Of a stretch of DNA of 64,000 bases, positions 25,946-28,356 are shown piece after piece (within the stretch, counting starts at the first letter, position 1; every line of letters begins with the position of its first letter). A program made the position numbers and the translations under genes. A model generated the notes under the pieces. It was not told the origin of the DNA, did not search any database, and saw only the letters and a program-made list of their open reading frames with translations. Source of the stretch: Syncephalis fuscata S228 (Eukaryota; Fungi; Zoopagomycota); contig JAHLTZ010000001.1 of assembly GCA_025786725.1 (NCBI GenBank), forward strand, positions 496,001 through 560,000, written 5' to 3'.

Positions 25946-27549
25946 TATTTTAAATCAAGAATTTAGTATTTCACAAACAAATAGCTGAGTCAAAGATAAA
26001 TCGAATAAGTAGGAAGTGAAATGACTTGCTTGGCGGTCAATTACCTATTGTTTTCAATATGAGAAAACTAACAAGTGGCGCCATACTGATGGGCGAATCT
26101 AATTCGTTGCAGCCTGATTCTTGCCATTTAACTGCAATTACCATAATTGGTAAAAGCTTTTAAATGATGACGCTGTACTCTGAAATAATCATCACCCTCA
26201 ATTTTTAATCATTGGTTATTATATTGTTAATAAGTCTGCGTTTGGTTGTGTCTACTCATCTATTCAAGCCTGTAATAATAAACATGCTAATTTTATTTTA
26301 ATTATATGTTATTATAGATAATAATAACAATAAAATTTGTTAATTTTGAAAGCAATATTTTATTAAATATAGGTAATTATGTGTGTATTTGTTCCGAGCA
26401 TCTGCTGCCTGGATGATACTTTACACAACTACAGCAATATCGAATCGTAAAAGTGATAGCTTTGATGAAAAATTTAATTTTTGAAAATATGCCGATATAC
26501 TATCATTGATTTGCAGAATAGAGAAGATGTATATGAAATCCACAGTCTTGTTCTAGTGCATTTATAATGAATTGTTTTTGTCATTGCCAAATAAGCCATT
26601 TATACACTAGAACTGTCACTAGTTAATGTGCCATGCACTGCTTCTGTGCATTCAATTTTAACTATATATATGACTGAAACGGATTGCTGAATACGTTATA
26701 ATATTAACATTATTTTATGATCAAGCAATCGATGACATCAATGGTTGAACCCAATGATTTAATATCGAAAATGCCATTACATAAAAATCAATAGCTAATA
26801 CCAGCAATCAATTGTTAACAATAACAATTGCAGCAATAGTGGATAGTACAATGTAGAAATGAGCTGCTCATTTTTGCAGATAAACCACATTGCCAATTTG
26901 AGTGGACATGCAAACCAATCAGTATATTGCATGATTTAGAAAACTACAACATGTTTATGCATAGTAGTAAATACTAGTAAAAAAGTACAAGTTTAATGCA
27001 TTGACATTGCTGTTGCATCGGCGTTAAGCGGCGTTTGGAACGCATGCAGATACTGAGAATTAAGATTGTTGAGTAAAAGCGATAACAGACATAGTGGTGC
27101 TTTATCACTGTGTTTTAAAACCAATATATTTATTTTGCATCGCATGGTCAGTTGCATGCAATGGTATAATACCAGCAATAAGTAACTTCTACCACATGTG
27201 TACTAGATGATTGAAATTGCCGCGTCATCTGTGTAATTGCCGAGCAGGTTAAAGCAAAAACCTCGGCAGCATGTTATTACGTCATTGCTATGTTGGTATA
27301 TACGTATGCTCCAAGCCACCATGCAAATGTGCTGTTATTGGTTCACGCTGTACATAATGGTATGACCTATACAGCACAGTATACTGGTAGCTCAGCATAA
27401 TATATACTTAAATAGCCCCAAAATACACACAACTAACTAGCGATATCATCGCCACATTCTAATCTCTGCCAAATACTCACTATTATCTATTTTATATTAC
27501 CGAATTTATTGTTTAATATACTTTATTATTTTAGCAAATCAATATCACC

Positions 27550-27885
27550 ATGAAGCTTTCTATTGCCGTCGTTTGCACCATTGTCGTGGCCTTTGTGGCT
27601 AATACTGCTATGGTGGATGCTAAGCCAAACCGAATCCGTCGTGCTGTCGAGCCATTGGCTAAGAGAGCGCCTAATACCGCTAGTAGCGACCTCGGTATGG
27701 CTCTTAAGCTTATTGGTGCCCTTAATCACGATATCAGCTCCGCCATTAAGCACAAGCCCGTTGGTGCCGTTAAGCGCGATATCATTAGTGCTGCTAACAT
27801 TATTGCCAAGCTTAAGCTTGTTGTTGGCTCTGCTCTTAAGCATCATCATTCCGAAGTTGTTAGTGCCCTTAAGCATAGTAAATAA
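27550..27885 (+). CDS. Intronless secreted pre-pro-peptide precursor (111 aa) with RR/KR sites and A(L/I/V)K(H/L) repeats; paralog of the micro-exon gene
   Basis: Signal peptide, then NRIRR|AVEPLAKR|...AVKR|...HSK*. Shares promoter, exon 1 and 3' UTR with the 35491-38399 gene. Confidence 0.9.
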   Translation: MKLSIAVVCTIVVAFVANTAMVDAKPNRIRRAVEPLAKRAPNTASSDLGMALKLIGALNHDISSAIKHKPVGAVKRDIISAANIIAKLKLVVGSALKHHHSEVVSALKHSK

Positions 27886-28356
27886 CCGAGTTTTCAAGCC
27901 ATTGGTATTGATAGCGTGATTGGACCGTCATTTCAACATATTTTAGATATATGCTCGGCAAAAGGCAAGACTGTTGGCAACTGTCATTCAATCTATTTAC
28001 ATATTAAATTCCAGTCAATACCCCTGGTTATTCACTCTTAATTGATAGTATTATCGTATTATCAACAGATTTGCAAATCTTATATTCTACAGTATTTGAA
28101 ATTTTGACTAATAAATAAAAAACATTAATAGTTTAAATTGACAACATATTCGAGTGAAGATAGGAAAGTGATAATACATATTTGTATCTACGCAAAATGT
28201 ACGACCTGCTTTAGCTAATTTATGTTTTAGTATTTATTATATATAGACAACATCAACTGTCAATGTCTAAATCATTATTTATTGTATGATTATATCAACG
28301 CCTTTACAATAATAAAAAATGTAGCAATGGCATATGCAAGTAATATTGATATGAAA

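Follow-up and report, generated by a model that had tools for sequence, protein, structure and literature searches.

The window analyzed here is a stretch of 64,000 nucleotides (nt) of Syncephalis fuscata S228 DNA (contig JAHLTZ010000001.1, positions 496,001 to 560,000), a mycoparasite that lives as a haustorial parasite on other moulds and does not cause disease in animals or crops. Coordinates without a contig name refer to this window. The gene under study lies at 27550–27885. We read it as a functional, strongly transcribed, intronless gene that probably descends from a micro-exon gene, through a spliced RNA copy that recombined with the locus in place.

Structure and transcription of the gene

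The open frame comprises 111 codons (111 amino acids), contains no introns and ends AAA TAA. Its parts and flanks are as follows.

26378–27549, plus strand: 5′ unit, made up of a distal upstream block, the proximal promoter and the 5′ untranslated region (UTR); shared by the family, with a 98.6% identical duplicate upstream of position 535
27550–27643, plus strand: leader, the same as exon 1 in micro-exon members; it closes with CGT G in phase 1
27644–27673, plus strand: spacer AVEPLAKR plus AP, contiguous here and present as exons of 3, 3, 15, 3, 3 and 3 nt in the micro-exon relatives
27667–27882, plus strand: orphan cargo without Cys, in which Ala, Leu, Lys, His and Ser are abundant and 16 codons are duplicated internally; KR at 75–76 would divide it into two peptides of about 35 residues
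27881–28102, plus strand: 3′ module, equal to the terminal exon of the micro-exon members, starting with AA TAA; its sequence is conserved family-wide

Three contigs of the public run X1 (27562–27797, 27769–27828 and 27799–27934) are colinear with the genome, and the depth of this run over the gene is 1,360 to 3,712 with no gap. Elsewhere the depth falls to about 8 (26400–27400) and to 0 (28000–28199 and 30400–31399); it is about 520 over the neighboring gene and 0 over a fungalysin gene. Such a very uneven depth fits RNA. One of the contigs spans the exon-1 boundary gap-free, and the transcript is therefore unspliced there. The initial annotation of this DNA, made from the letters alone, had described an intron-free continuation to an AA TAA end, which the open frame and the ungapped RNA-like contigs bear out. 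In the leader bin the depth totals about 200,000 over all paralogs, indicating that the whole family is very highly expressed. The X1 sample and the assembly differ at a single position within the gene, 27730 G to A (Asp to Asn).

A family with and without micro-exons

The gene belongs to a family of secreted pro-peptide genes seen so far only in Syncephalis fuscata. Its leader exon (94 nt) is 80–90% identical to 30 other leader exons, and the genome-wide search with exon 1 that had been proposed returns at least 147 leader matches in the 29.4-Mb genome (280–315 candidates). The leader encodes a putative signal peptide, MKLSIAVVCT..VDA, called from its n/h/c layout and the VDA before KP and not by a predictor, and then the pro-piece KPNRIRR. 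Among the 59 distinct members compared, 32 have arrays, 25 are intronless and 2 are truncated. In the array members, exons of 3 nt in phase 1, with introns of about 78 nt between them, come after the leader. The studied gene is not the lone intronless paralog, as at least 25 carry other cargos. Several intronless cargos are six-Cys peptides beginning CxxCxxxC; other cargos are proline-rich, charged and helical, or contain four or eight cysteines. The window holds one micro-exon member:

35239–38757, minus strand: promoter, leader exon, 34 micro-exons, terminal exon and 3′ module

Decoded in phase 1, this gene yields a six-Cys peptide with a CxxCxxxC start like that of the intronless paralogs; elsewhere in the family, too, this six-Cys type comes from genes of either structure. 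Constant 5′ and 3′ modules around an exchangeable cargo, as initially described for the studied gene, are found family-wide, in intronless and micro-exon members. An automatic decoder with splice-site matrices proved unreliable, and the key loci were read by eye. The spliced micro-exon models were joined for reading only, and their products were not searched against databases. In the array of member L040, neighboring two-unit blocks are 90–93% identical, with a period of 164 nt. Arrays thus grow by tandem duplication of intron-plus-codon units, which adds new codons and leaves existing ones unsplit.

NCBI holds the protein of the studied gene, whose relatives there are only S. fuscata hypothetical proteins. 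Searches of Pfam, a protein atlas and phage DNA with the gene gave no match, and full-text literature searches found no description of this peptide family, nor of 3-nt exon arrays in fungi. In the NCBI models of micro-exon members (P0008, P0005 and P0007), exon 1 is read through into intron 1 or into inserts, and most of the family is therefore mis-annotated or unannotated.

Evidence for a probable intron loss through a spliced copy

The homology of the studied gene to the micro-exon genes runs 30 nt beyond exon 1. The cargo had been described as completely different after the shared exon; it does differ, but the divergence starts about 10 codons past the boundary. Between 27644 and 27673 the units CTG TCG AGCCATTGGCTAAGA GAG CGC CTA follow each other uninterrupted and encode AVEPLAKR-AP. 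In L039 the counterparts are exons, namely CCG, TCG, a 15-mer, GAG, CTC and CTA, and 26/30 nt are identical to the studied gene. The order in L039, L040 and L042 is leader, intron 1, CCG, intron 2, TCG, intron 3, the 15-nt exon (CGCCATTGGCTAAAA), intron 4, GAG and more 3-nt exons. Joined in phase 1, these exons read AVAPLAKR, then AP, DP or AL. Five junctions within 27643–27673 are colinear with the three genes.

Homologous introns separate the same series of exons (exon 1, 3 nt, 3 nt, 15 nt, GAG) in at least seven micro-exon lineages: L003/4/6, L011/13, L016/20, L019, L023 and L054, besides L039/40/42. The studied gene is therefore without at least five introns that those lineages share. The 15-nt exon lies at about +310 to +330 in L003/4/6, L011/13, L016/20, L039/40/42 and L054, and at +102 in the studied gene. 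The xxxPLAKR spacer is a feature of a subfamily, with AVEPLAKR at 27643–27666 in the studied gene. Homologues of the 15-nt exon are also found within the intronless L053, L081 and L047, and L053 matches the GCT GTC GAG CCA of the studied gene exactly. Since arrays add codons and do not split them, a contiguous sequence colinear with several micro-exons points to derivation from the spliced form.

In the micro-exon members the 3′ homology begins exactly at the last acceptor (..ag/AA TAA..); in the studied gene it begins at 27881, and the 3′ exon junction is precise there. The 3′ module is 68.7% identical over 134 nt to the last exon of the micro-exon gene in the window (E 7.6e-6) and 68% identical over 198 nt to a consensus-like family member (E 2e-11). 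Homology of this 3′ UTR to the micro-exon terminal exon had been claimed, and the reading had been staked on a significant alignment; both alignments are significant. An alignment of 220 nt (A1) with 23 other members has a mean column identity of 74%, and the conservation reaches about 260 nt beyond the stop. The RNA-like contigs stop at 27934, about 50 nt past the stop codon, so that much of the conserved block may lie outside the transcript. A prediction of conserved RNA structure in the module returned 0 pairs. As the promoter and at least 220 nt of the downstream module are kept and there is no A-run, retroposition is rejected, and replacement of the gene body by complementary DNA (cDNA) via homologous recombination is indicated.

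Two side observations concern the 3′ module. It is more conserved than the coding cargo, and in L080 (G000:C112:854600), an intronless six-Cys paralog, the stop is lost and the frame runs 32 codons into the module until a TGA. A further piece of the module stands by itself upstream of the studied gene:

26199–26301, plus strand: orphan tail of a 3′ module (module positions 155–260), 70% identical over 107 nt, E 2e-5

This tail, about 80 nt upstream of the 5′ unit, also matches L032, L033, L047 and L072, which suggests that it is the remnant of a largely deleted tandem neighbor of the family.

The 5′ homology of the family extends about 1.2 kb upstream of the ATG (L003, L004 and L006 at 64–68%). 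A DNA search of the genome with the 5′ unit gave 42 scored matches among 315 candidates, and the unit is 72–82% identical over 458 nt to 40 loci. Its closest relative begins the window:

1–535, plus strand: copy 1, consisting of 5′ unit and leader exon with the ATG at 442; 99.3% identity
536–595, plus strand: remnant of intron 1 of copy 1, GTATGTTGCAATTAC..., compared with intron 1 of 28 members

Positions 1–535 are 99.3% identical to 27111–27645, and with flanks the near-identity covers 1,271 nt at 98.6% (L001 691–1956 and L002 689–1957). It stops at the G of CGT G (27643 = 535), in agreement with the initial annotation, which had the match to family exon 1 end at the donor of the copy. Past this boundary, copy 1 continues into intron 1 of the family with GTATGTTGCAATTAC, and the studied gene reads CTGTCGAG in frame. 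Downstream of the intron-1 remnant lies unrelated AT-rich DNA, where neither an array nor a 3-nt exon motif was found. Both versions, copy 1 and the 5′ unit of the studied gene, are present in independent contigs of runs X1 and X2. In the tree of 5′ units, the micro-exon clade L039/L040/L042 is the sister group of the pair formed by the studied gene and copy 1 (support 97/85); that clade and copy 1 bear introns. The phylogeny proposed to polarize intron gain and loss thus places the gene beside a micro-exon clade, but the tree is unrooted.

A reverse-transcribed, fully spliced messenger RNA (mRNA) copy would have recombined with the locus at two places, one in the leader exon and one in the terminal exon. 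All introns would then be removed at once, with the promoter and the downstream module staying in place. Such an in-place, cDNA-mediated loss with retention of the promoter had been suggested from the start. It gains from the spacer, colinear with six separate exons, and from intron 1 of copy 1; the tree tests given below allow either a recent loss confined to this gene or an older, shared one.

Alternative origins

Several points weigh against this account. That run X1 is RNA is an automatic guess, which is accepted here for its very uneven depth, and the splicing of micro-exons was read from coherent decoding, not from sequencing reads. The family comes from one species and its tree is unrooted, with no outgroup; the protein relatives all come from S. 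fuscata. Approximately unbiased (AU) tests allow the studied gene to be grouped with the other intronless paralogs that bear the spacer (p 0.14) or with L053 alone (p 0.45), and the loss is therefore perhaps older and common to other intronless paralogs. As for the cargo, no array encoding a relative of it was found, its excess of tandem triplets is slight (13 against 8.3 expected, p 0.13), and the amphipathicity of its peptides is weak. Finally, 10 of the 14 differences between the gene and copy 1 fall in the distal 356 nt (26470–26825) and 4 in the 818 nt nearer the gene, and the edges of the near-identity block coincide with both edges of the family homology block. This pattern of differences would suit gene conversion as well as recent duplication. 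Because conversion between neighbors 27 kb apart fits equally, copy 1 provides no date for the intron loss.

Alternatively, the gene may be a chimera, an origin that we consider rather unlikely but not negligible. Here the 5′ unit of an older intronless gene would have been overwritten by that of the micro-exon copy 27 kb away, or the reverse, by conversion or ectopic recombination. The older gene, with spacer, cargo and 3′ module, would perhaps be of common ancestry with L053, which also has AVEP, and the end of identity at the exon-1 boundary would mark only the end of homology and not the timing of intron loss. The near-identity indeed starts within 25 nt of the start of family homology and ends at the exon-1 boundary, with fewer differences near the studied gene, L053 is identical at GCT GTC GAG CCA, and the AU test allows a clade of L053 and the gene. 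The changes of gene structure on the 5′-unit tree, at least three on well-supported branches and 10 by parsimony, are also what module exchange would give, with 5′ units swapped among the genes, although repeated loss could account for them too. However, the tract does not take in the spacer or the two codons after it, and yet these resemble the same micro-exon clade (26/30 nt; AP with N or K after KR). Spacer and 5′ unit point to one clade, an agreement that arises without any exchange. Moreover, a chimera still requires an earlier intron loss for its intronless body.

That the intronless state is ancestral, with spacer-bearing intronless genes the oldest and the micro-exon genes derived by intron gain, is highly improbable. 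The tree is unrooted and does not reject a single split between intronless spacer genes and micro-exon genes, and a family known in one species offers no outgroup. Nevertheless, every micro-exon lineage would have had to gain introns at identical sites with a spacing of 3 nt, whereas the visible growth of arrays is by duplication of intron-plus-codon units. Copy 1, with its 98.6% identical 5′ unit, has intron 1, and in the Cys-rich clade 14 rows of intronless genes are intermingled with 9 rows of micro-exon genes.

The cargo and its predicted product

Intron loss through a spliced copy, the origin that we prefer, leaves the source of the cargo to be considered. The middle of the gene had been described as Cys-free and repetitive with about six copies of a motif. 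The description holds except for the count, since GCYNTTAAGC occurs in five exact copies in 27700–27874. The window contains 9 copies against 1.19 expected by chance, and 0/100 shuffles reach 9. A 31-nt stretch is repeated 48 nt further on with 81% identity (27706–27736 and 27754–27784). Searching the genome for cargo relatives by tblastn returned only the studied gene itself at E up to 10. With HMMER against 1.84 billion protein representatives, every match is confined to residues 1–41 and ends at residue 32–41; the cargo has no relative there.

The cargo could in principle have been captured or newly born. Leader, spacer and 3′ module would then come from the family, and the 72-codon cargo would have formed later, in the intronless gene, either through duplications within it that then diverged or out of foreign DNA, without ever being in micro-exons. 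We regard this as having little probability. The orphan status of the cargo, the 48-nt-spaced duplication at 81%, the five copies of the 10-mer and the failure to find a colinear array speak for it. On the other side, array cargos diverge past recognition even between close relatives: those of L039, L040 and L042 are wholly different though their 5′ units differ by 1–2%. An orphan cargo is therefore expected with or without an array origin. Furthermore, arrays can, by their decoded sequence, encode Cys-free Lys/Leu-rich peptides of a cargo-like kind. An array at G000:C2:653.9–660.6 kb, whose product would be Cys-free and rich in Lys, Leu and Asn, has at least 83 units (42/76 read by pattern searches), and one contiguous run in it spells VKLNKFLNEYIK. 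The pair TTA-AGC, typical of the cargo with 6 occurrences, is found as adjacent micro-exons twice in the genome, both times in this array.

Three candidate sources were tried and rejected. As parent of the cargo, the G000:C2 array gave p 0.017 with 29 units but p 0.26 with 42/76, the added units missing the prediction; it resembles the cargo in peptide class only. The initial suggestion that the cargo is the frozen product of another array finds no support in any identifiable array; the cargo is without relatives, and the sole TTA-AGC array is not colinear with it. The array of L033, whose 3′ module is among the closest, ends in 18 exons that spell ..QALHSQRGTRKYNRHVNN, with no convincing match to the end of the cargo. 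The read-through of L080, ..DISIGSALKP.., looks similar to the cargo, but an origin of the cargo from a translated and amplified 3′ module is not borne out. Aligned locally as DNA with 13 modules, the cargo scores 23.0, while shuffles average 23.7, and this negative test also counts against capture or new birth.

The encoded protein is predicted to be routed into the secretory pathway. Dibasic sites of the Kex2 type lie at RR30–31, KR38–39 and KR75–76. If cut behind RR31, KR39 and KR76, the precursor would yield a short spacer plus two helical peptides rich in His and Lys, each about 35 residues long, which would be partial duplicates of each other. The structure model of the cargo is helical with low confidence (predicted local distance difference test score, pLDDT, 50). 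The net charges of the two peptides are +2 and +3 without His, and their hydrophobic moment reaches at most 0.46, with shuffle p values of 0.03 (peptide A) and 0.21 (peptide B). Given the mycoparasitic life of S. fuscata, the peptides probably act extracellularly on host fungi or competing microbes. A membrane-active or effector role is a guess.

A possible two-state system

Taken together with the family, the gene invites a broader view, which we put forward tentatively and hold to be doubtful. Arrays might quickly generate new secreted peptides, because duplication or deletion of an intron plus its codon would always preserve the reading frame. Occasional recombination with cDNA might then fix one product as an intronless gene, which would go on to evolve by ordinary mutation. 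The studied gene would be one such fixed product, and the intronless paralogs, at least 25 of them, would be repeated instances. The secreted peptides of the family likely matter for mycoparasitism, and the annotation of the genome misses or mis-models most of a family so highly expressed.

Other observations on arrays and on the window

The arrays of L040 and L039 (G000:C24:474166–477852 and 539691–543366) are about 3.6 kb long and consist mostly of a recently amplified two-unit block; their GCx exons would spell a long Gly/Arg/Ser-rich repeat. Two arrays at G000:C2:520293–522758 (minus strand) and 537098–539571 (plus strand) form an inverted duplicate with identical exons and introns, rich in TTA exons (Leu/Ile, then Lys, Asn or Thr). 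A common insert interrupts the arrays of L042 (G000:C72), L051 (G000:C13) and L061 (G000:C323). It starts ..ttttattttgaagagCTTgtgagccccc.. and has a tRNA-like end (..gctgccttaccaactgg..), and it looks like an element of the short interspersed nuclear element (SINE) type landing in array introns. In at least one case, P0005, an annotated protein is apparently translated from such an insert.

The contents of the window are fungal and include a trifunctional TRP1-type gene and an M36 fungalysin. Over the neighboring gene at 28374–30352, the X1 contigs carry six 1-base insertions relative to the assembly (after 28895, 29143, 29428, 29604, 30110 and 30172). The minus-strand open reading frames (ORFs) 28357–28956 and 29400–30107 may be one gene split by assembly indels or strain differences. 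Beside copy 1, an ORF of 366 + 182 amino acids (780–2422, minus strand) has no Pfam match and belongs to a family of 73 genome matches with 35–68% identity, many copies of which contain stops. The family is a lineage-specific gene expansion or else an old mobile element.

Comparison with known systems

The likenesses drawn here rest on general knowledge of the systems concerned. Fungal precursors processed by Kex2 include alpha-factor, the Kex2-processed repeat proteins, Ustilago Rep1 and Candida Ece1, the source of candidalysin. The studied gene resembles them in its signal peptide, a pro-piece ending at RR/KR, KR between repeated peptides and helical products, all predicted here, and candidalysin would be the nearest analogue for a possible action of the product. 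Unlike the precursors named, it has no Pfam or sequence match, two peptide units only and weak amphipathicity, and its processing is read from the sequence. Superfamilies of the conotoxin type likewise surround a hypervariable mature peptide with a conserved signal and conserved untranslated regions in a large, expanded family. Here, in contrast, the variability is tied to arrays of one-codon exons, and the conserved blocks reach 1.2 kb upstream and at least 220 nt downstream.

The micro-exon genes (MEGs) of schistosomes have exons of 6–36 nt. Like them, the present family has products predicted to be secreted, with a first exon for the signal peptide, a conventional last exon, symmetric micro-exons between these and a hypervariable mature part. 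There is no sequence relation, however; the exons here are of 3 nt in phase 1, the introns are satellite-like, and the organism is a fungus and not a flatworm. The studied gene itself is without micro-exons, as seen from its continuous frame and colinear RNA-like contigs. With a processed retrogene it has in common that it is intronless and colinear with a spliced transcript, but its promoter is kept and the module continues 220 nt past the stop with no A-run.

A further parallel is intron loss mediated by mRNA through homologous recombination with cDNA, known from the Fink model in yeast and from reports in Cryptococcus. As in that process, several adjacent introns would have been removed precisely and together, with promoter and position kept and with no poly(A) tract or new insertion site. 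What differs here is the number of introns: the ancestor would have carried dozens, roughly one for each codon, which is an extreme number for one event to remove. In addition, intron-rich and intronless paralogs coexist in one genome. Intron loss via spliced RNA copies has mostly been inferred between distant species. Here one genome holds paralogs of one family in both states, with about one intron per codon or with none, and the homology between these states extends over promoters, leaders, spacers and downstream modules. With strains and sister species, it can therefore be tested directly in this family in which direction, how fast and by what mechanism introns are lost or gained.

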